From NCBI GenBank assembly GCA_010909165.1, contig VJWM01000126.1:496001-560000 (forward strand): a stretch of DNA of 64,000 nucleotides, in the 5' to 3' direction. The first letter of the stretch is position 1. Each line of letters begins with the position of its first letter. Positions 15,499-62,000 of the stretch are shown here, one piece after another. Below the pieces are notes generated by a model. It was given only the letters and a program-made list of their open reading frames with translations, had not been told where the DNA came from and did not search any database. This DNA comes from Anthoceros angustus (lineage: Eukaryota; Plantae; Anthocerotophyta). The position numbers and the translations under genes were made by a program.

Positions 15499-15520
15499 AC
15501 CTCCCTCTCGCAGGTCAGGG

Positions 15521-16757: not shown

Positions 16758-16949
16758 TAAATAGTAAATACTAAATAGTAAATAGTAAATAGTAAATAGT
16801 AAATGGAAAAAGCCCATCCGAGGAGGGACAATCGAAGGGGACCAGGGGTCGTGGAGAGGAGCAATCGAGCTCCCTACCTAAAGTCACCCTCACCCACAAT
16901 GTCATATGCGGGAAGAATAGCGCAAACCACGGAGGTAGAGGAAGATGTG

Positions 16950-21447: not shown

Positions 21448-21502
21448 GTTGATGTTGTTTGCACGATTTGGAGTTTCTCTGACGCTTTTCTAGTTCCTGT
21501 AG

Positions 21503-27027: not shown

Positions 27028-27221
27028 TGGGGTGCGCCAGGCAATGGAAGTAGTGCAAGCCCAAAGCGACGCTCGAGAAGCCGTGGAAGCAAGCTACCAC
27101 ATAAAGCTCGCCCCGAAAGAAATTAGATTCATATCATGTGGGTCGATGACCCACATATCAGATATTAAACTGATAAGAACAGATACTACACTTGATCTTA
27201 GCCAAAGGCCGAGAAAGGTAT
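27028..27221 (-). ncRNA. U2: U2 snRNA, type B
   Basis: As 13140-13337, with small deletions. Confidence 0.93.
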
Positions 27222-27617
27222 ACCTTCCTTTCGCAAGTCAGGGTCTATATGGGCCAGAGGCGTTAGGGTGTATTATACACGCCGTCCATGACTCCTGGCG
27301 GGCGGGCCTGTAAAACGCCGCGCTCCTGTCCTGGCGGGATGGCGAAATTAAAAGCGAATGAAGCAAGTGTCTCGGAAGCAGGCGACTGTACCATCCATAT
27401 ATCATCGCAACATTTGATTGGAGAACCCGTGCACGGCGCACGCAGGCAAGCTCGGTAGCAACCAAGATTTCTGGCAATCGCTCCTCGGAGTTCAGGAAGG
27501 CTGCTGTAAATCCATGGTATTTTGCCTCCTTCCTCAAGCCATCGTCTCCGGATCGTCTTCGTCGAAGTGTTTAACAGCTTCGTCCCCAGATAGATACAAC
27601 TTTGAGCCTGCACAGAA

Positions 27618-28413: not shown

Positions 28414-29182
28414 GAAAATTTGATGCACCGCACATTTGGGTCGGGTCCTGCATCCAGTGCGCCCACAATCAAAGCTTGGGTGCATTTGTACGTAGTGCTT
28501 TTCAAACTGTACTATTATTCTAAAAATTACATTATTCTCACATTCCTGATTCTGTGTTTGAGGGAAACAACAGCAACCCATCTTCAACTTACCAGCAGTG
28601 TTACCAGTTTTTTGACGGAAACACTAGCAAATTGGCTTCAAGTAATTTACGGGCCTGTCCAGCGGTTCAAGCTTATTGAAAGAATGATAATGACCCATCC
28701 AGCTTCACAAATGTTCCAAGTGTATCTCATCCTGCATTCGAGCTCGGGTATTCAGTAATGGACAAACAGAAGCCTCACATCCGCCCAACTGTGAGTTCAC
28801 ACAAGGCTGTAGGGCTGTACCTGACCGAAACCTGAAGACTTCAGTGAAGGCTCGGATCTTGTGTCGGGTGCTCAGGCACACTTCTTCTGATAACTGCAAC
28901 GACATGCTGAACAGGAAAAGATTTGTTAGCAGTCCCACCAAAGAAACTAATGCCTGAAGGCAAGAATACGAATCCAAGCGTTGTTTGAGGTTAGGAGGTT
29001 GCGGAACTCATGTTAGAAGAACCGCCGTAATATGTATGTACTGAAAGCAGAGTGTTTCCGCTCCACATACGGTTGGTTACGCTTTCCCGCACCTCGTGCT
29101 CCTTCCTGCAATATTAGATCCTCACGATCCAATCCAACTTTCAACGTCCGATTTGGGTTTAATTTGGGGTCCCCCGAGGGGG

Positions 29183-29379
29183 TGGGGTGCGCCAGGCAAT
29201 GGAAGTAGTGCAAGCCCAAAGCGACGCTCGAGGAGCCGTGGTAGCAAGCTACCACTTGAGGCTCCTCGCCCGAGAGAAATTAGATTAATATCATGTGGGT
29301 CGATGACCCACGTATCAGATATTAAACTGATAAGAACAGATACTACACTTGATCTTAGCCAAAAGGCCGAGAAAGGTAT
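29183..29379 (-). ncRNA. U2: U2 snRNA, type A
   Basis: Full U2 with USE+TATA. Confidence 0.96.
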
Positions 29380-30077: not shown

Positions 30078-31971
30078 CACTACTAGGAAAAGTATCCTTT
30101 TACAACGAGTTTTACAACACTTTTACAACAACCGTTGTAAAATTGTTGTTGTAAACACCCCTTAGTAATATACGTTGTAAAAACGTCAAACGTATATACT
30201 ACATAAACGTATACGTCCTTGCATATAGTATACGAGCATGGTATACACTGTCGTAAAATGGACCGTTGTAAATATTCTAAATTCTTGTAAATTCTACCAT
30301 TGTAAGTTATGTATGTACTGAAAGCAGAGTGTTTCCGCTCCACATACGGTTGGTTACGCTTTCCCGCACCTCGTGCTCCTTCCTGCAATATTAAATCCTC
30401 ACGATCCAATCCAACTTTCAACGTCCGATTTGGGTTTAATTTGGGGTCCCCAGGTGGGGTGCGCCAGGCAATGGAAGTAGTGCAAGCCCAAAGCGACGCT
30501 CGAGGAGCCGTGGTAGCAAGCTACCACTTGAGGCTCCTCGCCCGAGAGAAATTAGATTAATATCATGTGGGTCGATGACCCACGTATCAGATATTAAACT
30601 GATAAGAACAGATACTACACTTGATCTTAGCCAAAAGGCCGAGAAAGGTATACCTCCATCTCGCAGGTCAGGGTCTATATGGGCCAGAGGTGTTACGGTT
30701 TGTTCCCTACCGATATGGGGTAATACCCTATATGGTTATCGTTTCGTTTGACACTAGCTGGTCTTGAGGTCCTCTCAACGCTTTGCTTCTATGTTTTTTT
30801 CGTGGGTACCCAATAAGAAACCGTCTCCACTATCCTTCATCGCTAGTATGTAGTGGGCATCTGCTACATTTTGTTGTCTGCAAAATTGTTGCCATAGCTC
30901 TGCTCACGGAGACCCCGTCCCCACCCACAAATTTTTGGGAAGTGGGCTGCTGGGCTCCTTACCTGCACCTAGAGGCTTGGTTGTTTGTCAAGGCTTGAAT
31001 CCCCAAAGTGAGGTGGCGGGAGCTCTCTCCCTATAGACACACCGATTTGTTCGGTCCACAACAACGGGTCCGATTGCCACCCCGTTGAGCCATCGTTCGG
31101 CCACTGTCGGAAGATGAGACTAAAACAATCAGCGCCCTTCGTCCCTCCATCAGGCAATCCCATTTCTGACATCGCACTTCTTTACCGAAAGCCTTTTGTC
31201 CGGATATGGCCATCTTGATTGGGCCCTTATCTTTGCCCGTGCCTTTCCTCGGGGTGCCGAGCACAGTCTCGACCATCTCAAGGATTACTTTACCCCAAAG
31301 GATCCCTCTAGGTTATGGTTTCTTTTGGCGGCTGCAGTGTAGGGAGACACTACTAGGAAAAGTATCCTTTTACTTGAGTTTTTAACACTTTTACAACAAC
31401 CGTTGTAAAATTGTTGTTATAAACCTATAGTAATATCGTTGTAAAAGCGTCAAGCGTATATACTACATAAGCGTGTCGTCCTTGCATATAGTATACGAGC
31501 ATGGTATACTGTTGTAAAAATGGACCGTTGTAAATATTCTAAATTCTTGTAAATTCTACCATTGTAAGTTATGTATGCCGTTGTAAATATAGATGGCCTT
31601 GTTATTGAAACCATTGTAAATTGAGCCGTTGTAAAAACATTGTACCATTGTAAATATCTCCACGAATTCAAACTATTGTAAATAACAATAAATTAACCCA
31701 TTACAAACTCCAATATTGTCAATAAAATATACTATTGTAAAAAGTTTCCCGTCCAAATTCAAACCCTTGTAAAAAATGTATACCATTGTAAATTCTACTG
31801 TTGTAAATATTTCCCCCCAAAATTCAAATCATTGTAGATAATTCAACCCATTGTAAATTCTGTTGTTGTAAAGAGTTTCTGCCTTTGTAGATTTCTCCCG
31901 CCAAAATTCAAAACATTGTTAATAATTTAAACCAATATAAATTCTGACGTTGTAAATAATTTAGGTCATAC
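30078..31971. mobile_element. CACTA termini in unit III: truncated copy at 30078-30315, full copy at 31348-31971
   Basis: CACTACTAGGAAAAG at 30078 and 31348; the first is cut short by the local duplication. Confidence 0.85.
30455..30651 (-). ncRNA. U2: U2 snRNA, type A (local duplication)
   Basis: Duplicate of 29183-29379 across the TATGTATG junction at 30308-30315. Confidence 0.95.
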
Positions 31972-38594: not shown

Positions 38595-40079
38595 TATAAA
38601 CCCAAGGCAAAGACATGTCGTTGAGGAAGGCAGTAATCTACTACAGCCACAGCGGGAATGCAACCGAGGTACTAGACCACACTCAAAGCTTTGGCGGGAA
38701 AAGGCAGTTCGGAGCGTTAGGTTTTAGTATCGGTTTTGTACAATGGTGGCGATTGGAGAACTCTCGTGAAAAAAATGGTTGCTATATACGGTACAAAGTA
38801 TGCGAAGCATTCATCTCTTACAAGTTTGTACAATGGTGGCGGTTGGAGAACTCGTGAAAAAATGGTTGCTAGCATATACGGTACAAAGTATGCGAAGCAT
38901 TGATCTCTTGCAAGTTTGTACAATGGTGGCGATTGGAGAACTCTCGTGAAAAATGGTTGCTAGCATACTACGGTACACGATGTCACGAAGCATTGATCTG
39001 CTTGCAGAATGCCAACAGCAACGCAATTTTGTTTCTCCGTCTCGGCAAATCTTGAAGGCACGGAAAACCGGCTTCTGGCAACGCAGGACACTTATTATAC
39101 AGTCTAATGATGAAACTATTGCTCGGAAACTTACAAGTCTTCCTTGCCAAGTTCTTGCAGCACTGTTGTTTCCATCGATCACGGAGAGCGATAAACACTG
39201 AATGTGACTAACATTAATCTTGACCAAGGTAGATTGCGAAATCCTAAAAAAGTGCAGCACATCACCATCAATGGTGCGGTTTTATTTGGTCTACTTGTGA
39301 CTCATTTACTTTAGCCAACGCTCCAAGAACACAAAGTCCAAGTCTGCAAGGCATAATTCCAGCAAACGGCATAGCTTTGATAAAATTGCGGAAGAATGGA
39401 GTGCAAGTCATTCGATTAAGATCCTCCACACTCTAGACATAGGAATCACCACGCCTCCTGGTGAGAGCTCCAAGTTCGAGAGGAATCACCACGCCTCCTG
39501 GTGAGAGCTCCAAGTTCGAGAGGAATCACCACGCCTCCTTGTGAGAGCTCCAAGTTTAGTCGCGCGGAGGCGTGTACGAATAGATTATTATTCCTAATCT
39601 AGTAGGTTTTCATATAGAGATGCATATAGTGTAGTGGACAAGGTCAAACACTTGGTCTCGAGTTCGAATCTGATCTCGCGCGCACGTCGAGGCGTGTACT
39701 AATAGATTGTTTCTCCTAATCAAATAGGGTTTCGTATGTAGTGGTGGGCACGGGGTCATCTCTGAGAGACATGTAAGTGTAGAATATTATTTCCAATTAA
39801 ACACATTTCCGTAGGGATGGTATTAGTCTGGTGGATAAGATCATGCACCGCAAATAAGCGTATGAGGGTGCAAATAAGCGCATGAGGGTTCGAGTTCTTT
39901 GCCGTACAGTCCATATGCTATGTTATGGCTCGAAACCCTATGTATGTACTTGGGTACCAATGTATGCTACTTGGGTATCTCCAATAGTACAGTATTACTT
40001 TTAATTTTATGAATTATTGTATAGAGATAAAAACATTTATAAATTATTGTATAGAGATGAAATTAGTGTTGTGGTTGGT

Positions 40080-40597
40080 GTTATGTCCTATGTATACGCG
40101 ATTGTTTTTCAAGGGGGTCTAGACCCCTTTCGAACCTCAAGTGTTGGGCTAGTTGTTTTGTTGGCTATGGAGAAGCCCACCGGGTCCGCCCTATTGGAGT
40201 GAGAGAGGCTTTTTTGCGGCTTGTTGGTGGCATTGCCATCTTGCCTCGGGAGCAATTCCAGGGGCACTTTAGTCCACACTAGTTCGGCATCGCCGCTCCT
40301 GGGGGGGTGTGAGTCTGTAGCTTTTGGAGTGGGGGCGATTATGGAGTCTCATCCTAATTGGCTCGCACTGCAGGTGGACGTCGAGAATGCTTTTAACACG
40401 GTCTCCGGGGTGGCCATTTTTGACGAGTTCAAGGACGTAGGTGGACATGTACAGCTTGTCAGTCTTGTCCCTTTGGTTCGCTCCTTCTACGAGTCTCCTT
40501 CCAATCTCTACTATCAGCATGGGCCCGCGGTCGAGGGGGTTTCGGTGTTTGCCTTAGTAGCTGGCACAAGGCAGGGGGATCCATTGGGATTGTTTTG
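40080..40597 (+). mobile_element. CRE-like RT N-terminal fragment, unit III
   Basis: ORF 40221-40601 ..GGCESVAFGV..HPNWLALQVDVENAFN..GTRQGDPLG. Confidence 0.85.
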
Positions 40598-40651
40598 TTG
40601 ATGTTGTTTGCACGATTTGGAGTTTCTCTGACGCTTTTCTAGTTCCTGTAG

Positions 40652-43600
40652 ATGGCTCTTAAAAGAAAACCCATCGGGCGTCTTGGACGGGCAAGAAACA
40701 AGGTTCTATGGCTGAAGTCACGGCTAAGTCCATTACACATGATAACGTATCAAAACAATTCTTCACACTACAACCCGGGATGATGGTAAAGTTGATGGTG
40801 TCCTTGTGCAGTGAGGGAACTTATTTGGTGCGTAAGAAGGCCCAAACCGCCAAGGCACTTCTCATCCAAGAAGGATGCGGTGAATTGTTCGAGAAGAAGG
40901 GTGGACACCCGACACATGCCATTGGTGGAGGGCCACTTTGATTACTCATGTTCTTGGGGACTGAGAGGGGTTTGAGTATGTTGGTGAGAATGACCATTTG
41001 ATAACTGACGATTCCAGGGTTCTTAGCACTGCGAGAGTTTGTCTGCAGTCCAGAAATGTATGTAGTGCTGTACAACAAGATGCCTTATAGGCTGGTCTTC
41101 CATGCTTGGTTCGCGACCCTACGGTGATACGATCGTGAATGTCTTGATTTGTTTGAGAGATTGAGTCACGGGTCTTGAGGATGATTTTGCTATGGGCATG
41201 GAGGAAATTGATGACGAGGCTAACTTCAGAGAACAAGGGTTTGACCTCTCTGTCCCCGAGGGTGCTGTTAATGATGCTTTGAGTGGTGGTGAGGACAAGT
41301 CCAAGCCAAAGTACTTGGTGCCAGAGTCGTCTTAAGGCTTTCATGAAAGTCAGTGGTGTTTGGGGTTAGGATAGCGCAATGAGGACATCCCTTATAAGGA
41401 CTTAAACCTTATATTGATACCCTTTTTCCACCAAGTTTGGGGCTTGAAAGACAACTCTATATTCTCTCAAACATAAGCTCTGCCCTTCTTTTGTTTCGCT
41501 CTCATGTAAATTGTTGATTTTGACCTTTTGTGTGATGTCCTTCTTTCGAGGATTCAATCGAATCTTAGAGAAAGTGTATTCGAACCGAATGGCTTGGATC
41601 CGACATACCTATGATAAACATGTTTCACGGAATATTCCATGGGGCTTAGGCATGTTGGTGGATCATGTGAAGGACCTTAGAACTGCTTCATGTTGAAAGG
41701 AGGTTGTCGATATCGATGATGAGCGGCGCATACTATCCCATAGAGACCATCAATGTTCTTTTGGGTGTAGTGCCCCAAAATGGTACTTCTCTTGTCGCTG
41801 TTTCTTGGGTTGATTTTTGTTGCCTTGCTGTTGCAACGTTTTGCCTTGCCTTGGTATCTAACGTTCCAGAATTGTCTCGGTTTGCGTATTTCTGCATGAA
41901 TCGATTTGGAGTTCGTGGCGAAGAGGAGTTACATAACCTTTTAATTAGGGACTTGTCATTTTCATCACATTCAGGTGACAATTTATGCTATGTTTATTAC
42001 GTTGTGTTTCATGATTTTGTTGTGATGTAATCTTGTATAGTGTTGACGCTTTTTTTTTATCACAGATGAAGTATGGAAATTACAAAGTTGATGGTGTCCT
42101 TGTGCAGTGAGGGAACTTATTTGGTGCCTAAGGCCACTCCCAAACCGCCAAGGCACTTCTCATCCAAGAAGGATGCGGCACCGAATTTGTTGAGAAGAAG
42201 GGTGGACACCGACTGCCATTGGTGGAGGGCCGCGGGAGATTACTAAGCGTGTTCTTGGAGAGAGAGGGGTTTGAGTATGTTGGTGAGAATGACCATTTGA
42301 TAACCGACGATTCTGTGGTTCTTAACTGCGAGAGTTTGTCTGATCCGAAATGTATGTAGTGTCAGCATACAACAAGATGCCTTATAGGCTGGTGGCTTTT
42401 CCATGTCGACCTCTCGTGATACGATCGAATGTCTTGATTTGTTTGAGAGATTGAGGAGTGCGGGTCTTGAGGATGATTTTGCTATGGGCATGGAGGAAAT
42501 TGATGACGAGGCTAACTTGAGAACAAGGGTTTGACCTCTGCCCCGAGGGTGTTAATGATGCTTTGAGTGGTGGTGAGGACAAGTCCAAGCCAAAGTAATT
42601 GGTGCAGTCGTCTTAAGGCTTTCATGAAAGTCAGTGGTGTTTGGGGTTAGGATAGCGCAATAGAGGACATCCCTTATAAGGACTTAAACCTTATATTGAT
42701 ACCCTTTTTCCACCAAGTTTGGGGCTTGAAAGACAACTCTATATTCTCTCCGGAAACATAAGCTCTGTACCCTTCTTTTTGTTTCGTCTCTCATGTAAAT
42801 TGTTGATTTTGACCTTTTGTGCAGGTGATGTCCTTCTTTCGAGGATTCAATCGAATCTTAGAGAGAAAGTGTATTCTGAACCAGAGCCGGCTTGGATCTG
42901 ACATACCTATGATAAACATGTTTCACGGAATATTCCATGGGGCTTAGGCCGCGCTGGTCGCGTTGATGAAAATCAGCAAGGACCTTAGAACTGTTTCATG
43001 TCGAAAGGAGGTTAAGCTGATATCTGATGATGATGAGCGGCGCATACTATCCCATAGAGACCATCAATGTTCTTTTGGGTGTAGTGCCCCAAAATGGTAC
43101 TTCTCTTGTCGCTGTTTCTTGGGTTGATTTTTGTTGCCTTGCTGTTGCAACGTTTTGCCTTGCCTTGGTATCTAACGTTCCAATTGTCTCTCTTTTGATT
43201 TCGCATGAATCGATTTGGAGTTCGTGGCGAAGAGGAGTTACATAACCTTTTAATTAGGGACTTGTCATTTTCATCACATTCGGGCGGACAATTTGTACAG
43301 TATGTTTATTACGTTGTGTTTCATGATTTTTGTTGTGATGTAATCTTGTATAGTGTTGACGCTCGTTTTTTGTCACAGATATGAAGAACGTATGTCGAAA
43401 AATTACAAAGTTGATATGCGCAATTACCAAAGTGAGCATTTCTGGCCAAAAGTTAAAAAATATGAGAAAGACTTTATTGAAACTTTCAAAGCCGTGATTG
43501 ATCAGTCTCCGAAGTGGACTGCAAATGATAAGAATCTCTCTATTCAAGGGTTTCTCTTCAACTCTACCATTGATAATCCAAGATCTAATGTAAGTTTGCG

Positions 43601-46546
43601 TTGATTAGGGCTCGATCTTTTTTGCCTTTTAATGTACTAACTGTAAGTTTTCTTTAACTAGTCTTGGTATGCAAAACTCGGTTTCAAGGAATGCTCTCTC
43701 AATTTATGCAGACTATAGCAGAAGCAACTGGTCTTGATGGGTATTTCACCAACAAGAGCTGTCGTGTAACAATGATTACACGTCTGACCATGGCTTAGGT
43801 GCGCTTTGACGCTGGCAGAAGTGTCACTGGCCACAAGGTGATTTGTGGTAGCCGCGATGTTTGACTTGTTGATGCCATTTTCTTACTTTCTTATCCTAAC
43901 AATTTGAGGACTTGCAGATATGACCGTTCGGGGCAAGCAAAACAGGCAGCTGCAGCCAGGGTTCTAGTTCCTAGTGAACGAAGATCTTCCAAGGAGTTGC
44001 TCAATGAAGAACTTACTCGGATGCGGGATGATGATCTGCGGGGTGCTTCAAATCAATCACGAATGTGACTCGATAGTATTTGCCGATTAGCGGAAGATGT
44101 AAGTGTATTCATGCATGAGGAAAATCTATTTGTTCTTTGAAAATGTTTTGATATTGTGAGTTATGTACACTGCGGTCAATGTCCCTTACAAGTGCAACGC
44201 ATTGAGAATGTTAGCAATAATAAGTTTGTGGTGTTTTCCAAAATCGTGTCTTCATTACGTAATGTGTTCTCGACTCCCATTTTAATTGTCGGTCTTCATT
44301 GCTACCCCGATATCCATCATGAAAGTAGACATGATTCAACGTCGAGTGAACCAAATTTTCCTCCACGCGGGACTTGTCATTTCATACATTCTCAATTTAT
44401 GCTATATTTTATTACGTTGTGTTTCATGATTTTGTTGTGATGTAATCTTGTATAGTGTTGCTTTTTGTCACGATGATATGAAGAACGATGTAAAATTACA
44501 AAGTTGATATGCAATTACCAAAGTGAGCATTTCCGCCAAAAGTTAAAAATATGAGAAAGACTTTATTGAAACTTTCAAAGCCGTGATTGATCAGTCTCCG
44601 AAGTGGACTGCAAATGATAAGAATCTCTCTATTCAAGGGTTTCTCTTCAACTCTACCATTGATAATCCAAGATCTAATGTAAGTTTGCGTTGATTAGGGC
44701 TCTGATCTTTTTTGCCTTTTAATGTACTAACTGTAAGTTTTCTTTAACTAGTCTTGGTATGCAAAACTCCGGGTTTCTGAAGGAATGCTCTCAAGATTTA
44801 TGCAGACTATAGCAGAAGCAACTGGTCTTGATGGGTATTTCACCAACAAGAGCTGTCGTGTAACAATGATTACACGTCGACCATCTTAGGGCTTTGAGCT
44901 GGCGGGTGTCACGCCACAAGGTGATTTGTGGTAGCCATGTTTTGACTTGTTGATGCCATTTTCTTACTTTCTTATCCTAACAATTTGAGGACTTGCGATA
45001 TGACCGTCGGGCAAGCAAAGCAGTTGCGGCGGGTTCTAGTTCTAGTGAGCGAAGATCTTCCAAGGAGTTGCTCAATGAAGAACTTACTCGGATGCGGGAT
45101 GATCGGGGTGTGCTTCCTCCATCACGAATGTGACTCGAGTAGTATTTGCCGATTAAGCGGAAGATGTAAGTGTATTCATGCATGAGGAAAATCTATTTGT
45201 TCTTTGAAAATGTTTTGATATTGTGAGTTATGTACAGACTGCGGTCAATGTCCCTTACAAGTGCAACGCATTGAGAATGGTAGCAATAATAAGTTTGTGG
45301 ACTGTTTTTCCAGAATCGTGTCTTCATTCTGTAATGTGTTCTCTGACTCCCATTTTAATTGTCAGGTCTTGCTGGCTGTTGCTACCCCTGATATCCATCA
45401 TGAAAGTAGACCACAGTTCAACGTCAGCAGTGAACCAAATTTTCCTCCACGCGGGACTTGGCGTCCTGAAGATCAGGTTATTAATGCAAGTTCGTATGTT
45501 ACGGTCGGGTCCTTTTGGATGATCTGTTTTAACCCTATTTTGTGGCTCTTATTGATAGGTGAAGGACTTTGGAGCCATGGATGTTGATAAAGTGCTTGAA
45601 AGCAATGCTCAGGATCTGCAGATCAACAATAGCAGACCATCCACAGGGTCTTTCATTCAAATTCAATATGTTGACAAGGTTAGGTGTTTGCACATTGTTC
45701 TCCGTCCTTCCTATTCCATTTGGAGTTGGTCCGATTACGGCTTGGCGATTTCAAACCCATCCACTAAAGATGCAATTCCAGCCACCAGTTTGAGCAGCCT
45801 TACAGTTCCACATTTCAACATTGATGAAGCTCTGATCCCTGTTGTAGATGCAGTGGCCCCTCAGTTGGAGGCTATTGTGCCAAGTGATTGCGACGAGACA
45901 TCAGAAGTGCAACAGGACAGAATTGTGGCTATATCGCCTTTATATCTAGATATCGTAGTGCAGCGTGGGACTGAGAATGGAAATTCAAGCAAGTTTGAGC
46001 GTCTTCTTTGAGATCTCCGAGGCAGGAGTTGGAGTTTGATGGAGAAATAGGAAAGGGGTTTCAACGGCAAAAGATTTAGAGGTATTGATTGAGCGGCGTG
46101 CAAAGCTGTTGAACTTTGAGTGTCCAAGCAAGAGAAAGCTCGAGATCCAGAGGCGAAAAAATGTGGGAAGGAGACAAGAACACTTCAAACATCAAGAAAA
46201 ACTCAAACAGCACCAGAAAGAGCAATAGGACATGCGAAGACTGCAGTGGGAAAGGCAATAGAATCAAAAGATTGATAATGGGGCTCGAGGGGTCTCCGCT
46301 GCTACCCACGAAAAACCGTCGGGATCGATAAGTGATCTTATCTTCCCTTTATTACTTTCAGGAGTGAAAACTAATGTTTGTGTTTGATTATGTTGTTGCC
46401 TTACGGAAGATGAAGAATTTCTTGAAGCCCTCACTTCATCAACTTCGTACTATGATAATGTTGGACAAGTTGTGCCGATCAAAACAAGTGGTCGTGAAAA
46501 TTATATTTTCAATTTCTACAATTATACGATCAATTTTCCAAAATAA
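40652..46546 (+). mobile_element. Crypton/DUF3504-type tyrosine recombinase gene with introns, unit III (catalytic exons present, internally duplicated)
   Basis: Spliced consensus: NRFGVRGEEELHNL (R, 43223) | QYEERMSKNY (K, 43398) | WYAKLRVSEGMLSRFMQTIAEATGLDGYFTNKSCRVTMITRL (R, 43763) | VTGHKVICG/LARYDRS (H, 43832; intron 43848-43908; Y). Last exon NYIFNFYN(C/Y)TINFPK*. One in-frame TAG at 43796 plus indels. Confidence 0.8.
40788..45460. repeat. Two successive local duplications in the recombinase gene (40788-42092/42084-43415 and 43257-44376/44369-45460)
   Basis: Junction microhomologies AAAGTTGAT at 42084-42092 and GGGACTTG at 44369-44376. Confidence 0.88.
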
Positions 46547-47203
46547 GGTAAATATCTTTGCTTAAGTATATGTGCCTCTATTACGAATACGTTCGATGTC
46601 CCTAGTTATATGCTTAATTTACATTGTTTATGTAGGTTTGATTCCAATAATGGGGATCAATCTATTATGGTATTTACTCTATATTTTTAATTTTTATTTC
46701 ATACCATTCTAGATATATAGGTAACTTTGCAAAGAATAAATTTATTTGTCGGTTTCTTGTAAATCCTGGATCCGCATGAATATTACTTAATGGAATATGT
46801 TTCTGTAAATTAGCGATTTTGGTCGGATTTCTAGTCAATGATCTTCTATTTAGATTTACCTAATATTCACCTGGTTACCCATTTTTCAACTCTGCTGTCC
46901 TGATTTCAACATTGATGGTGAAATATTTTCACCTATCAGTGCATATTTTCTATTCTATTGTAATAAATTTGATCCTACTCAGCAAAATAATGATCTTCAA
47001 TTTACCTCCTCCACCCTGGAAGAAAATCGAGCGAGCGCGTCGAGGCCCCATACGAGGCAGCGACTTTACATACTGAAAGCAGAGTGTTTCCGCTCCACAA
47101 ACGGTTACGCTTTCCGCACCTCACGCTCCTTCCTGCAATATTAAATCCTCACGATCCCATCCAACTTTCAACATCCGATTTGAGTTTAATTTGGGGTCCC
47201 CAG

Positions 47204-47401
47204 TGGGGTGCGCCAGGCAATGGAAGTAGTGCAAGCCCAAAGCGACGCTCGAGAAGCCGTGGAAGCAAGCTACCACATAAAGCTCCTCGCCCCGAAAGAA
47301 ATTAGATTCATATCATGTGGGTCGATGACCCACATATCAGATATTAAACTGATAAGAACAGATACTACACTTGATCTTAGCCAAAAGGCCGAGAAAGGTG
47401 T
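47204..47401 (-). ncRNA. U2: U2 snRNA, type B
   Basis: Type-B substitutions; 5' end reads ACACC instead of ATACC. Confidence 0.93.
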
Positions 47402-49959: not shown

Positions 49960-50725
49960 GAAAATTTGATGCACCGCACATTTGGGTCGGGTCCTGCATC
50001 CAGTGCGCCCACAATCAAAGCTTGGGTGCATTTGTACGTAGTGCTTTTCAAACTGTACTATTATTCTAAAATTACATTATTCTCACATTCCTGATTCTGT
50101 GTTTTGAGGGAAACAACAGCAACCCATCTTCAACTTACCAGCAGTGTTACCAGTTTTTTGACGGAAACACTAGCAAATTGGCTTCAAGTAATTTACAGGC
50201 CTGTCCAGCGGTTCAAGCTTATTGAAAGAATGATAATGACCCATCCAGCTTCACAAATGTTCCAAGTGTATCTCATCCTGCATTCGAGCTCAGGTATTCA
50301 GTAATGGACAAACAGAAGCCTCACATCCGCCCAACTGTGAGTTCACACAAGGCTGTAGGGCTGTACCTGACCGAAACCTGAAGACTTCAGTGAAGGCTCG
50401 GATCTTGTGTCAGGTGCTCAGGCACACTTCTTCTGATAACTGCAACGACATGCTGAACAGGAAAAGATTTGTTAGCAGTCCCACCAAAGAAACTAATGCC
50501 TGAAGGCAAGAATACGAATCAAGCGTTGTTTGAGGTTAGGAGGTTGCGGAACTCATGTTAGAAGAACCGCCATATGTATGTATGTACTGAAAGCAGAGTG
50601 TTTCCGCTCCACATACGGTTGGTTACGCTTTCCCGCACCTCGTGCTCCTTCCTGCAATATTAAATCCTCACGATCCAATCCAACTTTCAACGTCCGATTT
50701 GGGTTTAATTTGGGGTCCCCTGAGG

Positions 50726-50920
50726 TGGGGTGCGCCAGGCAATGGAAGTAGTGCAAGCCCAAAGCGACGCTCGAGGAGCCGTGGTAGCAAGCTACCACTT
50801 GAGGCTCCTCGCCCGAGAAATTAGATTAATATCATGTGGGTCGATGACCCACGTATCAGATATTAAACTGATAAGAACAGATACTACACTTGATCTTAGC
50901 CAAAAGGCCGAGAAAGGTAT
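50726..50920 (-). ncRNA. U2: U2 snRNA, type A
   Basis: Full U2 with USE+TATA. Confidence 0.96.
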
Positions 50921-51646: not shown

Positions 51647-52273
51647 CACTACTAGGAAAAGTATCCTTTACAACGAGTTTTACAACGAGTTTTACAACAC
51701 TTTTAGCGACCGTTGTAAAATTGTTGTTGTAAACACCCATAGTAATATCGTTGTAAAAGCGTCAAGCGTATATACTACATAAGCGTATCGTCCTTGCATA
51801 TAGTATCTGAGCATGGTATACCTTGTGTAAAATGGACCGTTGTAAATATTCTAAATCCTTGTAAATTCTACCATTGTAAGTTATGTATGCGTTGTAAATA
51901 TAGATGGCCTTGTTATTGAAACCATTGTAAATTGAGCCCTTGTAAAAACTTTGTACCATTGTAAATATCTCCGAATTCAAACTATTGTAAATAACAATAA
52001 ATTAACCCATTACAAACTCCAATATTGTCAATAAAATATACTATTGTAAAAGCGTTTCCGTCAAATGCAAACCCTTGTAAAAATGTATACCATTGTAAAT
52101 TCTCTTTTGTAAATATTTCCCCAAAATTCAAATCTTTGTAGATAATTCAACCCATTGTCAATTACATTGTTGTAAAGAGTTTACGCCTTTGTAGATTTCT
52201 CCTTCAAAATTCAAAACATTGTTAATAATTTAAACCAATATAAATTCGACGTTGTAAATAATTTAGGTCATAC
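51647..52273. mobile_element. CACTA terminus with subterminal repeats, unit IV
   Basis: CACTACTAGGAAAAG at 51647. Confidence 0.88.
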
Positions 52274-53004
52274 TAAATAGTAAATAGTAAATAGTAAATA
52301 GTAAATAGTAAATAGTAAATAGTAAATAGTAAATGGAAAAAAAACCCATCCGGAGGGGACAATCGAAGGGGACCGAGGGGTCGGCGTGGAGAGAACAAGC
52401 GAGCTCCCTACCTAAAGTCACACCTCTGATATGTCATATGCGGGAAGAATAGGCACGCAAACCACGGAGAGTAGAGGAAGATGTGTCACACAGCATCGAC
52501 TCTTCAATTCCATACTGCAGCAATTAGATACGTTCCACATAGTTAAAGCCTTCATCTTCTTCCCATTTGAGTGCTTACATTGTTGTAAAGAGTTTACGCC
52601 TTTGTAGATTTCTCCCGCCAAAATTCAAAACATTGTTAATAATTTAAACCAATATAAATTCTGACGTTGTAAATAATTTAGGTCATACTAAATAGTAAAT
52701 ACTAAATAGTAAATAGTAAATAGTAAATAGTAAATAGTAAATAGTAAATGGAAAAAGCCCATCCAGGAGGGGACAATCGAAGGGGACCAGGGGGTCGACG
52801 TGGAGAGGAGCAACTGAGCTCCCTACCTAAAGTCACCTACTGCACCCACAATGTCATATCGGGAAGAATAACAGGCACGCAAACCACGGAGGTAGAGGAA
52901 GATGTGTCACACAGAGCATCGACTCTTCAATTCCATACTGCAGCAATTAAGTCGTTCCACATAGTTAAAGCCTTCATCTTCTTCCCATTTGAGTGCTTAC
53001 ATTG
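52162..53004. repeat. Local ~420-bp tandem duplication (subterminal zone, heptamer tail, CRE UTR)
   Basis: Junction TTACATTG at 52575-52582. Confidence 0.88.
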
Positions 53005-56000
53005 AACCATCCAAGGCGGTGTCCACTCTCCTTCCAATATGCATTCAACTTCTTGACCATGAACCAGGTTTGGGCCTTCCAGTAGCAATCTCCATTGTGG
53101 GGCTCTTACCAAACCTACCTTCATCAGCCACAAAGACCTTTTGAACTCCATTGCCAAAATGAGCGAAAGGTTTGATCCTGCTTTATCCACCTTACTGGAT
53201 GGGGCCACTATCCCGTCCCTCTTGTCACGTTCTCCTTCAAGAAAATCTGCTACTGCTCCTCCTTCACAGATTTGGGCCTCACCTTCTTGACTCCATCCAA
53301 AAAGTTCCTAGCTTCTTGTGGACTACGGACTTCCCTGGGGGGTTAGAAATTAGGTAGGATTTTGTTTTTTTTGTGGGAGCGAAGGATAAAATGAGGCGAA
53401 AAAGGAGGAAATAAGCCCGGTTAGCACTCCGGACGGCACTCGGAGTATACTCTGACTCGGAGTGAGGAACGACTAGACCTCGATGGCGGCGCATAAGGTA
53501 ACGGGTAAGTCCGACCCACCTGTGACCAAGGTGATAAGTACGCCAGTGAAAGTAACTTAGAAGTTGGGCGTAAGGACGGACTAGGGCGACGCCACGTGGG
53601 CGACCACAGTGGAGGGCGGGCATGCGCCGGGTCAGACTGTAATGCTGTGAGGCCGTTATAGCGGTATTCACGCCCGCGGGCCGCGGCGCGAGGCCGCAGT
53701 ACGGGCGAGTAAGGCCGAGCACGCAGCAGAGGGGCCGGTAAGCCATGCACTGCCACGGACAGGAAGAGGCGCCCCGCCCAGTTACTCCGGCGTGGTCGCG
53801 GAAGAAGGTCTCACGCAGCCTGAGACACTCGCGATCTCGCGCCCGCAACCGCTCGCGGTATCTCGGGACACTGACGCTCGCGCGGCTCACCGCTGAGGTC
53901 GAGAAGCGAACGCGCGAAGGAGGCTCAACGCGCTGCCAGCCTCCAAGCGGCCGAACCAAGGAGGAGAAGGCGATGGCACCCAAAAGCCAGCGGAAGTTTG
54001 GGAGCCATGGAACCTTGTGGAGCGCAACATTGTGACCCGCGCTATCCGGACTTTGGGCCTGCCCAGGAAGCGGAGAATTGGTGCAGGAGTGGCATTTGGA
54101 TGTGTTCCAAATGGTCCGACATTTGACAAGGTCACCGTCCGGAGTTTGCCCAAGATGTCGGGCGGTCAACAAGGAGGTGCGGTCCAAGAACCTCCGGAGG
54201 ACCCAAGGCGATGGACCTTGGAGGTCTGGCGGCCTAGCCCAAGGAGGAAGAGGGGAGGGTGCCGAGCCCTCAAGGCGAAGGGAAGATAGGTCCAGACAGA
54301 GCCGGCGCTAAGGCGGACGCAACGACCACCAACGGGTCGATATCCGACCGCTGGATGGGGGCCGGTGGCCCGGATCATCGCCCATCGAACCTACTCACCA
54401 AGGTGGATCACCTTGGTGATAATCTATTGGTGTTCCCGCGCGCTGCGCCGGGGAAGAGGGCGACTGGGAAGGATTATCTTCGCCCGGTTTAGCGAGGCTC
54501 AAGCTCGGGGCGAAGCCTCGCCATCTGGCCCCCCATACCGATCCATGTATGGGGCATTTCAACTCCTCAAGGAAGGAGAGCTTGAGCGAGCCCAAAGGAC
54601 TGAGGCCTCAAGTGGAGCGGCAAGGGCGCCGAGGCGGGAGGCGGTCGTCGAAAACCAAACGGACTGGAGGAGGACGATCGAGGATTCCTGACTCCATACG
54701 GAACGGACCCCTCACCACCCAGTATGGGAAGCAATTCCCGCCTCCCTCAGGTGCCCCAACCCAGGCAGCCCGATCCGGCGAGGCGGCCCAGGCCCGGCCC
54801 CGCCAGCCATCACTCGGTGAGGCCGGACAGGAGAGGCCGAAGCGCAAGACCACGGCCTGTGCGGCACCCAGTCGGTGCAGTACCTCTTCCCTGCGGGTGG
54901 CAAGCGGAGGAAGCGATGGGAGGCGAGAAAGGGGCCAGCGCGAGGCGAGAGGACAGCGGCGGCGCATCGAGGCAGTCTGTCGCCCGGGAAGGGGCAAAAG
55001 GCGTGCTCCGGACTCCATCACCTCCGCCGAGCCCTGTGGAGGAAAGGGCGAGAAGGAGCTGCGCCAAAGGGCCAAGGAGGGGAAGCTCCGAGCCAGACTC
55101 GTGACCTAAGGGTCCCGATTGTCCGAGAACCCACCCCGACTTGCTCGGATCATGGTATGGAGGTCCTTGACGGACCGTGAGATGCCGGCCCCGCCACGGA
55201 CTTTGTGGGAGCCTCACTCAGCAGGCCGTGGAGGAAACACGGCGGTCCTGCCACCGCCATGGACGGTATGCCTGGGGTCTCGGGATGGCCGAGAAGGCCT
55301 GTGGAGGTGGAAGCCACCCGAGGCGCATGGTGCTCCTCCGTGAGCAGCTGGAGGAGCCCAGAGGCGAGAAGGAAGGCCAAGCCTCAGATTGAGGAAGGAA
55401 AACGCCGGAGGCGGAGAGGGAGGTCCGTCCATCCGCAAGGACCGGACTAAATTCCTTCACCGAGGAACAAGCAGCAAGGAGGCCCAAGCGCGGGCGGAGG
55501 ACCTCTGCAGGCAGAGGGGCGAGCGCAACAGAAGCGAGGCGCCGGCGCAAGAACGGGCGCGGATCTCGCGAGGCAGCCTGACCGACCAGAGCCAAGCTCG
55601 AGAGGCTCAGGTGAAGGTGGCCAAGGAGGCGGAGGCCACGGCGAAGGCCGATCGCGATCACTATCGGCGTGATCGGAACCGGTGGAGGCGGCCGAGAGCC
55701 GCGCCAATCAAGGCCGAGCAAGTGGTCATGGAGCAAGCACGGCCGAGCCGTGAGGAGGCATCGGAGGCCAGACCCGGGAGATTGGGGACCCCTCAGCACT
55801 GCAGGAGGTAGAAGGCGGAGGAGGCGGAGGACAACAAGGACACCTTGGAGGTCTGGCGGCCTAGCCCAAGGAGGAAGAGGGGAGTGGTGCGGGCCCCTCA
55901 AGGCGAAGGGAAGATAGGTCCGACCACGGCGATGCTAAGGCACAGGGCCAGCGGACCCTGTGTTGGGCGATATCCTGTTGGGCGGTCGAGTCGAGGCGGT

Positions 56001-59000
56001 GGCGGATCGCCGTCCTTTGGAACCTACCAAGGTGGATCACCTTGGTGATAATCTAATAGTGTTCTGCAGCGTTGCGGGGAAGAGGTGAGGAAGGATTATC
56101 TTACGGTTTAGCGAGGCTCAAGCTCGGGGCGAAGCCTTCGCCATCATCCCCATACGATCCATGTATGGGGCATTTGAACTCCTCGGGAAGGAGCTTGCGC
56201 TCGGGAAAGGGCTGGAGGCCCTGGGAAGTGGAGGCGGGCAAGGCCGGAGGAGGCAGTCGTCGAAAACCAAGCGGACTCGGGAGGAGGCGGGGAGGGATTC
56301 GGACTCCATCGTGGGCGGACCCCTCACCACCCAGTATGGGAAGCAATTCCCGCCTCCTCCTTCCGTGCCCCAACCCAGCAGCCGATCCCGAGGCGGCCCG
56401 GCCGGCCCGCCATGGCCATCACTCGGTGAGGCCGGACCGGGAGAGAGAAGCGCAAGACCCACACGGCTGTGGCGGCGAGTCGGTGCAGTACCTCTTCCCT
56501 GCGGGTGGCAAGCGGAGGAAGCGATGGGAGGCGAGAAGGCCGAGGCGGAGGACAGCGGCGCATCGAGCCGGTCATCGCGCGGCGGGGAAGGGGCAAAAGG
56601 CGTGCTCCGGACTCCATCACCTCCATGAGCCCGGGAGAAAAGGCGGAGAAGGAGCTCATGACCAAAAGGGCCAAGGAGGAAGCTCGAGCTCGGCCTCGGG
56701 ACCTAAGGGTCTGATTGGGTCGGAGAACCCGGTCGGACTTACTCGGGCTGGTATGGAGGTCCTTGACGGACCGTGAGATCACTCCGCTCACGGACTTTGT
56801 GGGAGCCTCAGGCGGCCGTGGAGGAAACACGGCGGGTCACAGCTACCGTCATGGACGGTATGCTCTGGGATCTGTGGGATGGCCGAGAAGGCCGGAGGTG
56901 GAAGCCACCGGGCGCATGGTGCTCCTCCGGGAGGCGGAGGCTGGAGGCCAGGCGAGAAGGCGGCTCTCGGCGGATTGAGGAAGAAGCGGGAGGCGGAGGG
57001 AGGTCTGGTCCATCGCAGGCCGGACCAAATTCCTTCAGTGGAGGAGCAGTGAGCGAGCCAAGGAGGCGGGCGGAGGACCTCTGCAGGCGGAGGAGAGCGT
57101 CGGCGGCGAAGGAAGGAGAGCTTGAGCGAGCCAAGGAGGAGGCGGAGGACCTCGGGAAGGAGGCGGCCGTGGACGAGCCAAGGCTGGAGGCTCGGTGAAG
57201 GTGGCCAGGAGGCGGAGGCCACGGCAGCCGATCGCGATCACTCGGCGTGATCGGGCCGGTGGAGGAGGCGGCCGGAGCCAATCGAAGGCCGAGCAGTGGC
57301 GCGGAGCAAGCAGTCGGCCGTGAGGAGGCAGGCCGGCACCGGGAGATTGGGGACCTCGAGTGCAGTGCGGGAGGTAGAAGAGGCTGGAGGACAAGGACAC
57401 CTTGGGTTGCAACTCCAAGATGCACGGAGCAGCAGGGTTCTCAGCGAGAATCCAAGACTTCGAGCGAGAGGTGGAACGCCCAGCCCGCTTGAAGACGGAG
57501 GAGAATAGGCGCGGTGCAAGGAGTTCGACGCCGCAAGGTTGCAGCAGGATGGCGGAGCCTGACGGGGATACCGCCCGCCTGGAGAAGGAAGTGGAGGACC
57601 TCCGGAAAGAATAGACGGAGGGAAGAAGGCGGGGAGGAAGGATTATCTTCGCCCGGTTTAGCGAGGCTCAAGCTCGGGGCGAAGCCTTCGCCATCATCCC
57701 CATACGATCCATGTATGGGGCATTTGAACTCCTCGGGAAGGAGCAGCGGCGCTCGGAAAGGGCTGGAAGTGGAGGCGGGCAAGGCGGAGGAGGAGGCGGT
57801 CGTCGAAAACCAAGCGGACTCGGGAGGAGGCGGAGGAGGATTCGGACTCCATCGTGGGCGGACCCCTCACCACCCGAAGTATGGGAAGCAATTCCCGCCT
57901 CCCTCCTCAGTGCCCCAGCAGGCCGATCCAGCGAGGCGGCCCAGGCCCGGCCAGGCGGCCCGGCCATCACTCGGTGAGGCCCCGCCGGACGGGAGAGAAG
58001 CGCAAGACCACGGCTACCAGCGGCAGTCGGTGCAGTACCTCTTCCCTGCGGGTGGCAAGCGGAGGAAGCGATGGGAGGCGAGAAAGGCCGAGGCGAGAGG
58101 ACAGCGGCGGCGCATCGAGCAGTCTGTCGCCCGGCAGGAAGGGGCAAAAGGCGTGCTCCGGACTCCATCACCTCCGGAGCCCGGGAGAAAAGGCGGAGGA
58201 GGAAGGAGCTCATGACCAAAAGGGCCAAGGAGGAAGCTCGGGCTCATCGGGACCTAAGGGTCTGATTGGGTCGGAGAACCCGTCCGGACTTACTCGGCTG
58301 CGGTATGGAGGTCCTTGACGGACCGTGAGATCTCCCTACGGACTTTGTGGGAGCCTCTCCACGGCCGTGGAGGAAACACGGCGGGTCACAGCTACCGTCA
58401 TGGACGGTATGCTGCAGGATACATGCGGGATGGCGAAGGCCGGAGGTGGAAGCCACCGGGCGCATGGTGCTCCTCCGGGAGGCGGTTGGAGGAGCCGAGG
58501 CGAGAAGGAAGGCAGCTCGGCGGATTGAGGAAGAAGCGGGAGGCGGAGAGGAGGTCTGGTCCATCGCAGGCCGGACCAAATTCCTTCAGGAGGAGGCAGT
58601 GAGCGAGCCAAGGAGGCCCAGCGGAGGACCTCTGCAGGCGGAGGAGGCGGTTGGAGGAGGAGGCGGCCTTGGCGCAAGCGGGGCAGGCGCGGATCTGGAG
58701 GCGGCCGTGGACGAGCCAAGGCTCGAGGTGAAGGTGGCCAGGAGGCGGAGGCCACAGCGCCGATCGCGATCACTATCGGCGTGATCGGGCCGGTGGAGGA
58801 GGCGGCGGCAGCGAAGGCCGAGCAAGTGGCAGCAAGCAGTCGGCCGTGAGGAGGCTGGAGGCCCGGCCACGGGAGATTGGGGACCTCGAGTGCAGTGCGG
58901 GAGGTAGAAGAGGCGGCGGAGGCTGGAGGACAACAAGGACACCTTGGGTTGCAACTCCAAGATGCATCGGAGGCGGGGGTTCTCAGCGAGAATCCAAGAC

Positions 59001-62000
59001 TTGACGAGAGGTGGAACGCCTCCGGCTCCGAACGGAGGAGAATGGCGGCGGTGCAAGGAGTTCGGCGTCGCAAGGTTGCGGCGGGATGTGGCGGAAGCCG
59101 AGTCGGACGGGGATCTGGCCGCTGGAGAAGGAAGTGGAGGACCTCGGGAAAGAATAGCGAAGGGAAAGCCTTTGGAGGAAAAGTCGGTTGCTCGTCCGGC
59201 CAGGAAGGTAGGAGCTCACCCATGGCCCGCATCATGAGCCGAACAACGACGGAGGAGGAGAACGCCAGCCAAGGTTGCAAGAGGTAACTGAGGCAGCCTT
59301 GACGGCCTCAAGAGTCCGCCTACACTGTAAGCTTGGCCACGGAGACAAAGGCCAGGCCGGGCGATCCGCCACGAGCACCTGAGGAGGGAGTACCGTGCCC
59401 GGCTCATGTGGAGGAGGCGATTCCAAGTCGATTCCGACCGCCTACTACCACGCAGAGCTCCTCAAGGCTCGAGGTCCCGCGCCACCCCAGGCAGGAGGTG
59501 GACTCCAAGGGATGGAAGGAGGAGCGAGAGGACGGACCCGGGACAACCGCTGGAGAAGGAAGTGGAGGACCTCGGGAAAGAATAGCGAAGGGAAAGCCTT
59601 TGGAGGAAAAGTCGGTTGCTCGTCCGGTTGCGAGGCGAAGGGAGCTCGGCTCCATGGCCCATGGCGGCGGGAACAACAGGAGGAGGAGAGCGTCGGCGGC
59701 GAAGGTTGCAAGGTAGCAGGCGGCCTTGGCGGCCTCAAAGTCCGCCCGCTCGGTGGTAAGCAGCCCGCGAGGCAGGCCCGGCGATCTGCTCGATTCTGGA
59801 GCACCTGGAGGAGGAGAATGCGGGTGCTCGGGCTCATGTGGAGGCGATTGAGTCGATTCCGACCGCCTACTACCGAGCTCCTCAAGGCTCTGGAGGTCTG
59901 CGCCACCCTAGGCGGGAGGTGGACTTCGGAAGGATGGAAGGAGGCGAGAGGGCGGACCGGGGCAGCCTGGCGGAGTCCTAGGAGCGCTGCTTGACGACGG
60001 CAGCAAGCAAGGAGAGCCGGAGGAACCGGAGGAGGAAGGGGCGCCACACCGAGGTAAGCCCTCGGCACCCTCGCATGGAAGGACGAGGGAGGATCTTGAG
60101 AGGAAGGGTGCAACCGGGCATTCGGGAACCAAGGGAGGGCTCATGTGGAGGCGATTGACAAGTCGATTCCGACGCCTACTACCGAGCTCCTCAAGGCTGG
60201 AGGTCTGCGCCACCCTAGGCGGGAGGTGGACTTCGGAAGGATGGAAGGAGGAGGCGAGAGGGCGGACCGGGGGCAGCAACAGCAGGAGTCCTAGGGCTGT
60301 TTGGCAGCGGCAGCGGCGGGCGAGGCGGCGGAGGAGGAGGAGGGGCGCCACAGGAGGTAAGCCCTCGGCACCCTCGCATGGAAGGGGCGAGGAGGATCTT
60401 GAAGGGAAGGGTGCAACCGGGCATTCGGGAACCAAGGGAGGCTCGTGGATGAACCCGTGGCTAGCCCGGAGGAGGCATGCCGAGCACGAGGTCGGACTTT
60501 GTCCTGACCCGAGGAAGGCCGATCCCGAGGTCCGCCTCAAGGAAGTCCGACTTAGGGATCCAGACTCAGTGAGTCCGACCCGAGGTCCGGACCCTGTGGA
60601 AGGGTTGGGTCCAAGACCGACCCCAGAGGCCCGGCCCCGAGGACCTGACTCAAAGAAGGCCGGACCTAGAGGTCCGGACCCCAGAGGGAAGACCTGACCC
60701 GAGGTCCGGACCGAGTCGAGACAGTGGTCCCGAGGTCCAAACTCGGGAGTGGGGAGAGCCACCACACCAACCCCAGCAGATCCAACCTTGAGGGCCCACG
60801 CAGGGCCCGCCAGAGAGAGAAGAGGGAGGACGAGGAAGACTTGGTGGTGACGCCGTTGTCGAGGCCGGACCCGGAGGCGGAGGACCTCTGCAGGCGGAGG
60901 AGGAAGGGTCCCGCCGATCATCCGATTGGGTGCATGACCGGAGGCTCGGCTTTGGGCCGCCGGTGCCAAGAAGGAATCAGGGGCTATCCACCACCACCGA
61001 CCACGCGATAGGTGAATAGGCAGGTAGTAGGCGGCCGGCGGACGAGCCAAGGAGGCTCGGTGAAGGTGGCCAGGAGGCGGAGGCCCAGGCCGATCGCGAT
61101 CACTGGGCGTGATCGGGCCGGTGGAGGAGGCGGAGAGGGAGGCGGCCAATCGAGCAAGTGGCGCGGGCAAGCAGTCGGCCGTGAGGAGGCTGGAGGCCGG
61201 CACCGGGAGATTGGGGACCTCGAGTGCAGTGCGGGAGGTAGAAGGGGCGGGCGGAGGCTGGAGGACAACAAGGACACCTTGGGTTGCAACTCCAAGATGC
61301 ATCAGGCGGCGGGGGTTCTCAGCGAGAATCCAAGACTTGACGAGAGGTGGCCTCCAGCTCCGGAAGACGGAGGAGAATGGCGGTGCAAGGAGTTCGGCGT
61401 CGCAAGGTTGCGGCGGGATGTGGCGGAAGCCGAGGAGTCGGACGGGGATCGGCCGCTGGAGAAGGAAGTGGAGGACCTCGGGAAAGAATAGCGAGGGAGA
61501 AAGCCTTTGGAGGAAGTGATTGCTCGTCCGGTTGCGAGGAAGCGGGGAGCTCGGCTCCATGGCAGGCGGGCTGGAACAGCAGGAGGAGGAGAGCGTCGGC
61601 GTGAAGGTTGCAAGAGGTAGGAGGCGGCCTTGGCCTCAAGAGTCCGCCCGCTCGGTGGCAAGCAGCAGGCAGGCGGCGGTGGCGATCTGCTCGATTCTGG
61701 AGCACCTGGAGGAGTGCGGTGCTCGGGCTCATGTGGAGGAGGCGATTGGGTCGATTCCGACCGCCTACTACTGTGAGCTCCTCAAGGCTGGAGGTCTGCG
61801 CCACCCTAGGCGGGAGGTGGACTTCGGAAGGATGGAAGGAGGAGGCGAGAGGGCGGACCGGGGGCAGCAACAGCAGGAGTCCTAGGGCTGTTTGGCAGCG
61901 GCAGCGGCGGGCGAGGCGGCGGGAGGAGGAGGAGGGGCGCCACAGGAGGTAAGCCCTCGGCACCCTCGCATGGAAGGGGCGAGGAGGATCTTGAAGGGAA

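Follow-up and report, generated by a model that had tools for sequence, protein, structure and literature searches.

The window analysed here, a 64,000-nt stretch of the Anthoceros angustus assembly GCA_010909165.1 (contig VJWM01000126.1, positions 496,001–560,000, forward strand), contains the remains of a multi-exon gene that, judged from its sequence and from a structural model of a relative, encoded a Cre-like tyrosine recombinase of two domains. Eukaryotic and strongly repetitive, the window is divided by self-comparison into tandem units of ∼13.8 kb: unit I (1–13709), unit II (13710–27593), and unit III (27594 to ∼47790), the last of which exceeds the others in size through insertions and local duplications and is followed by partial repeats. 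Five partial copies of the gene, all on the plus strand, could be aligned, one each in units I and II and the remainder (III0, IIIa, and IIIb) in unit III, where alone the central exons are kept.

Copy IIIa occupies 42.4–44.1 kb. Its N-terminal, core-binding-like domain survives as remnants (42388–43124) that were located by tblastn with residues 243–326 of the family member P0001 (E = 2.8e-5), correspond to profile positions 112–232 in the X-joined alignment described below, and carry frameshifts as well as in-frame stops at 42648–42650 and 42945–42947. The exon with the first catalytic arginine (the Arg-I box; 43199–43299, reading NRFGVRGEEELHNLL and ending GGQFV) matches profile positions 239–273 at 21.8 bits, has the RGG of its box altered to RGE, and ends in phase 2 at CA/gtatgt; removal of intron 1 (43300–43378, 79 nt, GTATGT...CAG, phase 2) gives the in-frame reading GGQFV-Q-YEERMSKN. 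Exon 2 (43379–43589, YEERMSKNYKV...IDNPRSN) holds the catalytic lysine box, scores 76.4 bits against the family profile (E = 3e-22), and is the sole exon of IIIa free of lesions. Across intron 2 (43590–43661, 72 nt, GTAAGT...TAG, phase 0) the reading PRSN joins SWYAKL, gap-free against NPRSNAWFSS of the family. Exon 3 (43662–43847, profile positions 349–383) runs from SWYAKL through the K-x-x-R box, FTNKSCRVTMITRL, to the His box, VTGHKVICG, and its alignment with IIIb exposes a frameshifting 4-nt deletion near 43680–43687 and a TAG at 43796–43798. Removal of intron 3 (43848–43908, 61 nt, GTAGCC...GAG, phase 1) places TGHKVICG before LARYDR with the H-9-Y spacing of the family. Exon 4 (43909–44068, profile positions 405–441) bears the tyrosine nucleophile within RYDRSGQAKQAAA and ends at a TGA stop; comparison with the GLARYDR of units I and II locates a 1-nt deletion at ∼43916 that puts it out of frame with exon 3.

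The three introns of IIIa are short, have GT–AG ends, and restore the reading frame, and the codon and phase of intron 1 recur in the metagenome homologue L007 (GFV GA/gtaagt...ttag/G TAT AAT GAA), a relative with ∼35 per cent protein identity. The Calypogeia gene P0029 carries an intron at another place, just before RGG. At least two more introns are likely to lie in the N-terminal half of the gene.

The other copies are less complete. Copy IIIb (44369–45460) is a local tandem duplicate of 43257–44376 (90.7 per cent identity by self-BLAST); it is without the Arg box, its exon 2 is marked by small deletions, its Tyr box has lost 2 nt, and its exon 3 starts in frame (SWYAKLRVSEGMLSRF, continuing to FTNKSCRVTMITR) before a 7-nt deletion, with profile matches of 19 bits and, for exon 3, 33.7 bits. 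Copy III0 (40788–42067) is likewise a local tandem duplicate, of 42084–43380 (89.7 per cent identity by self-BLAST), and comprises N-terminal remnants and an Arg box (41875–41970, 23.8 bits), ending ∼30 nt into exon 2 at the duplication junction. The unit I copy (8050–9200) retains N-terminal remnants, an Arg box (8839–8904), and GLARYDR followed by a stop (9073–9096); that of unit II (21990–23200) retains GLARYDR (22993–23013) and an Arg box (22773–22892) that matches the profile at 44.3 bits (E = 1.7e-12) and, alone among the window copies, has the RGGxEL form found in the family. Both share a deletion of ∼500 bp that sets in ∼10 nt after the start of exon 2 and extends as far as the end of intron 3. 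Every copy in the window is therefore dead through frameshifts, stops, the ∼500-bp deletion, or truncation, and none is protein-coding; all are products of the segmental duplication of one ancestral locus, without transposition.

A preliminary description of this locus, made from its sequence, had read the stretch from 40652 to 46546 as an intron-containing recombinase of the Crypton/DUF3504 type, and the catalytic motifs that it listed were all found on the plus strand by stop-to-stop translation: FGVRG..E at 43214–43240 (and again from 41905, 8869, and 22803), YEERMSKN at 43380–43403, the K-x-x-R box at 43745–43786 and, in IIIb, from 44839, TGHKVICG at 43826–43847, and GLARYDR, intact in unit I (9073–9093) and unit II and broken by the deletions noted above in IIIa and IIIb. 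The limits that it gave for intron 3 were rederived exactly, and its observation that no single copy is intact is correct. The terminal F.NC.. motif that it reported exists in the family, where P0002, P0007, P0008, and P0032 have NCxVxI close to their C-termini; the window offers only a weak candidate for it, SHFNC at ∼45351, 9453, and 23354, that has no profile match. The left part of the interval, from 40652 to ∼41190, could not be demonstrated to belong to the gene.

Ten single exon pieces of the window gave no recombinase match in Pfam because they are too short, and external homologues were therefore needed to identify the gene. A word-indexed protein search with the 86-residue exon 2 piece, confined to a length range that leaves out full-length relatives, likewise gave no match. 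The intact exon 2 piece (window 43344–43601) was used as a phmmer query against 1.84 billion protein cluster representatives and recovered 12 proteins (best E = 7.5e-8). These comprise hypothetical proteins of the fern Adiantum capillus-veneris (five models on contigs of 150–178 Mb) and of A. nelumboides, a product of the liverwort Calypogeia fissa, and sequences from JGI and Logan contigs of transcriptome or metagenome origin. A protein search with the family alignment added at least four further members (P0029–P0032, one of them a Calypogeia paralogue and three Logan proteins), while a search with the catalytic region of P0008 gave no further member among the matches listed, and the profile confirmed no locus among metagenome and viral contigs. 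Full-length members measure 448–642 residues and share the motifs RGGxELY, ERLSKNYKV, NKSGRTTxVTRM, and TGHKSxGAYxRYD, with NCxVxI at the C-terminus of several. The family is a small, unannotated one of land plants.

Returned to the window by tblastn, the members give collinear plus-strand matches from the N-terminal region (GGEDKSKRQSNW) to the Tyr box. A profile built from 12 members was searched against the six-frame translation of the whole window, 2,878 pieces in all, and matched the plus strand only, in the same order in each unit. When those pieces of IIIa that are in frame are linked by an X at each break, without repair, the resulting reading covers profile positions 112–439 and scores 194 bits against the family profile (E = 2e-61 for one sequence). 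Chance matching of motifs was considered and rejected on these E-values. A quick tree built from the core region gives the window copy a long branch; its identity to all members is 28–38 per cent, it groups weakly with the metagenome protein P0003, and it stands apart from the fern and liverwort-type clades, so that the source species has its own lineage of the family.

The fold was tested on the family member P0001 rather than on a broken window copy. An AlphaFold model of its residues 185–545, made with a 22-row alignment, has a mean predicted local distance difference test score (pLDDT) of 82.8 and a predicted template modelling score (pTM) of 0.63, and in a Foldseek search of the PDB the first 17 ranks are taken exclusively by structures of Cre or of Tre, an engineered variant of it (E = 5e-7 to 6e-6, TM 0.56–0.67, probability 1.00), with ∼345 aligned columns, so that both domains are matched. 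These are followed by Tn1549 Int, XerA, the integron integrase IntI, lambda Int, and the DUF3504 protein QRICH1, with no topoisomerase among the structural matches; a library of viral structures yielded generic phage integrases that are no closer than Cre. Already in an earlier model of full-length P0008, built from 12 sequences and with a pLDDT of 42, the best PDB matches were Cre. Within the P0001 model RGGxE follows a helix, SKN lies in a flexible loop after a beta hairpin, NKSGR opens a helix, and TGH and RYD fall in the last helices, which places the motifs at the predicted positions of recombinase residues.

Two Pfam families recur among the 22 family sequences at E ≤ 0.1, and no others: DUF3504 (PF12012; 6 sequences, best E = 1.8e-5 over profile positions 3–160 of 162) and Phage_integrase (PF00589; 7 sequences, best E = 6e-4). 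The domain of the Starship ‘Captain’ recombinases, DUF3435 (PF11917), whose profile the preliminary description had proposed for the search, has no match at that threshold in the same 22 sequences. The active site of the family comprises, in order, Arg (RGG), Glu, Lys (SKNYK), Lys-x-x-Arg (NKSGR), His (TGH), and Tyr (RYD), all invariant or nearly so; in the window the R / K / K-x-x-R / H / Y set is present across the copies. The last four residues are spaced K-3-R-23-H-9-Y in the family and in the window, where IIIa conforms when its TAG is counted as one residue, and this is the spacing of H289, R292, W315, and Y324 in Cre.

Eight full-length genes for U2 small nuclear RNA (snRNA), 2–3 per unit and all on the minus strand, were recognized with Rfam at 146–168 bits (1583–1779, 13139–13337, 15300–15498, 27027–27221, 29182–29379, 30454–30651, 47203–47401, and 50725–50920), and their presence in every unit means that the recombinase remnants fall within spacer DNA between genes of a U2 array. 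This array is a higher-order tandem, in which the ∼13.8-kb unit encloses U2 sub-repeats of 1.27–2.16 kb. The 5' end of the U2 genes reads ATACCTTTCTCGG, which we take to be the plant-type form. The canonical upstream element of plant snRNA genes, TCCCACATCG, is absent in its exact form from the 64-kb window; CCCCATATCG, with two mismatches to it, stands at about −60 of one U2 gene (30651) together with a TATA-like box, an arrangement that resembles a plant snRNA promoter.

Several further features of the window were recorded. In units I and II the recombinase pseudogene is closely followed, on its downstream side, by minus-strand open reading frame (ORF) fragments (9457–11934 and 24172–25865) that resemble, by eye, the integrase and reverse transcriptase (RT) of Ty1/copia-type elements; they are absent from unit III, where unrelated sequence (45460–46198) stands in their place, and this presence and absence reflects either an insertion or a deletion younger than the unit duplication. 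Minisatellites have a 27-bp unit in ∼7 copies (3940–4139 and 17656–17851), a 90-bp unit in 2.7 copies (38735–38977), and a 415-bp unit in 2 copies (52162–53004). The region from 54000 to 62600 is a block with a G+C content of 65 per cent, in which the plus strand is strongly skewed towards purines and towards G; it is composed of ∼1.5-kb repeats of 79–95 per cent identity and holds long ORFs on both strands, the longest of 550 residues (59908–61560, minus strand). Two long ORFs of the minus strand were compared with Pfam, and neither gave a match. An exact look-up of ten ORFs of the window likewise gave none.

We put at roughly 60 per cent the probability that the window holds decayed copies of an intron-containing, Cre-like recombinase gene from a land-plant family whose most likely role is in a Crypton-like transposon. 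Since the family is nearest to Crypton recombinases, the window copies would be the fossil trace of a lineage that has yet to be described from land plants. Crypton-type mobility is plausible, and we infer both the recombinase activity of the intact relatives and their transposon nature. Three proteins of A. capillus-veneris (P0002, P0013, and P0014), from the loci KAI5075093, KAI5080618, and KAI5071405, are 98.5–98.7 per cent identical on three different chromosome-scale contigs, and the family is patchily distributed, with 12 matches among the 1.84 billion representatives, both of which are transposon-like properties. No gene of an RT or DDE family was called beside the recombinase gene at the two Calypogeia loci L003 and L004, at the metagenome loci L007/L008, or at two Adiantum places. 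JGI metagenome contigs L005–L010, first considered as separate copies, proved to be a single eukaryotic locus sampled in six metagenomes, with a TauD-domain gene alongside; its two versions are 97 per cent identical, have different premature stops, and differ by 13 synonymous and 55 non-synonymous substitutions, a neutral pattern that marks it as an independently decaying copy of the same family.

A number of observations weigh against this reading. The best Pfam scores fall below the gathering thresholds (25.3 against 29.7 bits for DUF3504 and 19.6 against 27.1 bits for Phage_integrase), so that the ‘DUF3504-type’ of the preliminary description is apt for the closest relative and not for membership; the family profile has no match among PDB sequences; and the second catalytic histidine (His-II) of the usual R-H-R-Y set is replaced by lysine in every member (NKSGR, or NKSCR in the window), which gives R-K-R-Y. 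The window copies all derive from segmental duplication. One segment of ∼29 residues, with the His box and the Tyr nucleophile, is missing from each of the three near-identical Adiantum models, which could denote a non-autonomous or inactivated subfamily or a common annotation artefact. Other observations would fit a non-mobile host gene family that arose by ancient domestication of a recombinase, like the DUF3504 genes of animals, and of which the window would hold a pseudogene within the U2 array. Members such as P0008 (2.2 kb), P0001 (2.8 kb), and P0030 are intact and apparently intron-free on contigs that resemble spliced transcripts; the Calypogeia paralogues are old and deeply diverged (50 per cent identity), with an annotated abhydrolase gene ∼3 kb downstream at L003 and a CBS-domain gene ∼10 kb downstream at L004; an intron position and phase are kept across ∼35 per cent protein identity; the C-terminal NCxVxI motif is conserved; and no element termini were found, a search for element ends not having been possible.

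Domesticated DUF3504 genes, however, typically lose their catalytic residues, according to a survey of Cryptons (PMC3212892), and the present family retains all of them. Nearly identical copies on three Adiantum chromosomes, neutral decay in two independent lineages, and a very sparse distribution are also at odds with a host gene, and we consider domestication possible and yet rather doubtful.

It is very unlikely that the gene is a fungal or animal contaminant, or an integrated viral integrase, instead of a plant gene. Such a source would have an obvious candidate in the DUF3504 Cryptons (‘Glomhoppers’) that abound in Glomeromycota, inhabitants of bryophyte thalli and fern roots (PMC13465315), although the family is not similar enough to DUF3504 to have come from them by recent transfer. 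The protein does structurally resemble phage integrases as well, but the viral matches are generic and no closer than Cre, and the spliceosomal introns of the gene also count against this explanation. The named homologues on contigs of 7.8–178 Mb in fern and liverwort assemblies, together with eight U2 genes whose 5' end is presumably of plant type, favour a plant origin over contamination. With a Cre-like fold and recurring DUF3504 and Phage_integrase matches in the family, introns with canonical ends that restore the frame and share a position and phase with an independent homologue, and a plant genomic context, none of the three refuting circumstances that the preliminary description named has arisen, and its interpretation is supported in its essentials.

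An RT-like ORF fragment on the plus strand (40221–40601, reading QVDVENAFNTVS and then GTRQGDPLG; Pfam RVT_1 at only E = 0.29) recurs at 21168–21452 and ∼7400–7600, in each unit ∼600 bp upstream of the recombinase remnants. A tyrosine-recombinase retrotransposon of the DIRS/Ngaro type that incorporated this fragment, as its position just upstream on the same strand in all three units might suggest, is very unlikely, since the RT motifs (D..NAFN and GTRQGDPLG) are presumably those of a non-long terminal repeat element, of the long interspersed nuclear element (LINE) kind, and not DIRS- or Ty3-like, wherever homologue loci have gene calls no RT-family gene adjoins that for the recombinase, and the best Pfam relative, DUF3504, is a Crypton-derived domain. 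We judge the RT fragment to be unrelated to the recombinase gene. LINEs that target U2 genes (Utopia and Keno) are known from other eukaryotes and unreported from plants (PMC4640811), and an assignment of the fragment to Utopia was set aside for that reason.

An intact enzyme would act by attack of its tyrosine on a phosphodiester to form a 3'-phosphotyrosyl link, with strand exchange through a Holliday junction; the complete active site of the family is consistent with this usual tyrosine-recombinase chemistry. Most probably it would serve to excise and integrate a DNA transposon of the Crypton-like kind in which it is the only enzyme encoded. In the window, one copy of the gene landed or resided between clusters of U2 snRNA genes and was afterwards multiplied without any activity of its own: the 13.8-kb array unit was duplicated in tandem, and two local tandem duplications within unit III followed. 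Deletions, frameshifts, and stops accumulated in all copies.

The window copies are functionless, and their value is as a marker of the family and as a dated record of the growth of a U2 snRNA array; the interest lies in the family to which this fossil points rather than in the dead copies. The pseudogene led to fern and liverwort proteins that have neither a name nor a Pfam domain, and that nonetheless fold like Cre and retain a complete active site, in which, unusually, Lys stands for His. Should the intact members be active, they would add a transposon superfamily to embryophyte genomes, explain a class of ‘hypothetical proteins’ in annotations of non-seed plants, and offer new recombinases for study. 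A stronger proposal, which we hold tentatively and think improbable in its full form, is that embryophytes (at least ferns, liverworts, and the source of the window) have an old Crypton-like lineage of their own, of which intact, expressed copies in some liverworts would still be active, site-specific recombinases with a topoisomerase IB-like Arg-Lys-Lys-Arg-His/Tyr site; embryophytes would then have their first Crypton lineage, from which eukaryote-native recombinases might newly be obtained. Bolder still, and a speculative idea, is an exchange of the lineage between early land plants and Glomeromycota symbionts rich in DUF3504 Cryptons. No land-plant Crypton lineage is described in the searchable literature (PMC3212892; PMC13465315; PMC9977147), which does not cover Repbase, where an unpublished entry is possible.

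Cryptons have been listed from fungi, animals, and stramenopiles (Kojima and Jurka 2011, PMC3212892), to which a 2026 paper on Glomhoppers added those of Glomeromycota (PMC13465315). The only Viridiplantae Crypton with observed activity is CryptonF-1_cRei of Chlamydomonas reinhardtii, which was observed to insert and excise at a short CAYCG target (PMC9977147); it shows that such elements do work in this group, but it is of the CryptonF type and from a chlorophyte alga, and it is set beside the plant family by description only. The closer likeness is to CryptonA/DUF3504, which are also eukaryotic tyrosine recombinases, have no RT or DDE partner, as may likewise hold for the plant family, may contain introns, and follow the motif pattern ..RG..E.., ..SK.., TN[HK]S.R.T, TGH.S....Y; DUF3504 gave the lowest Pfam E-value, in a nearly end-to-end match, and QRICH1 is among the structural matches. 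Unlike these, the plant family scores below the Pfam gathering threshold, has R-K-R-Y in place of the R-H-R-Y of Cryptons, and bears a long, acidic or variable C-terminal tail with NCxVxI, whereas animal Cryptons are described without a C-terminal domain; its hosts are land plants, and its mobility is inferred.

Cre of phage P1 (for example PDB 1ma7, 5u91, and 3crx) is the best structural match, over both the N-terminal helical and the catalytic domain, and its last four catalytic positions are spaced exactly as in the family (3/23/9), but sequence identity is 12–16 per cent, with no sequence match to PDB chains, and the family, whose gene is eukaryotic and intron-bearing, has Lys for H289 and His for W315. 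Type IB topoisomerases have the active site Arg-Lys-Lys-Arg-His plus Tyr, and therefore resemble the plant family in placing a lysine at the His-II position of tyrosine recombinases; in its fold match and its domain layout, however, the plant family is of the Cre type.

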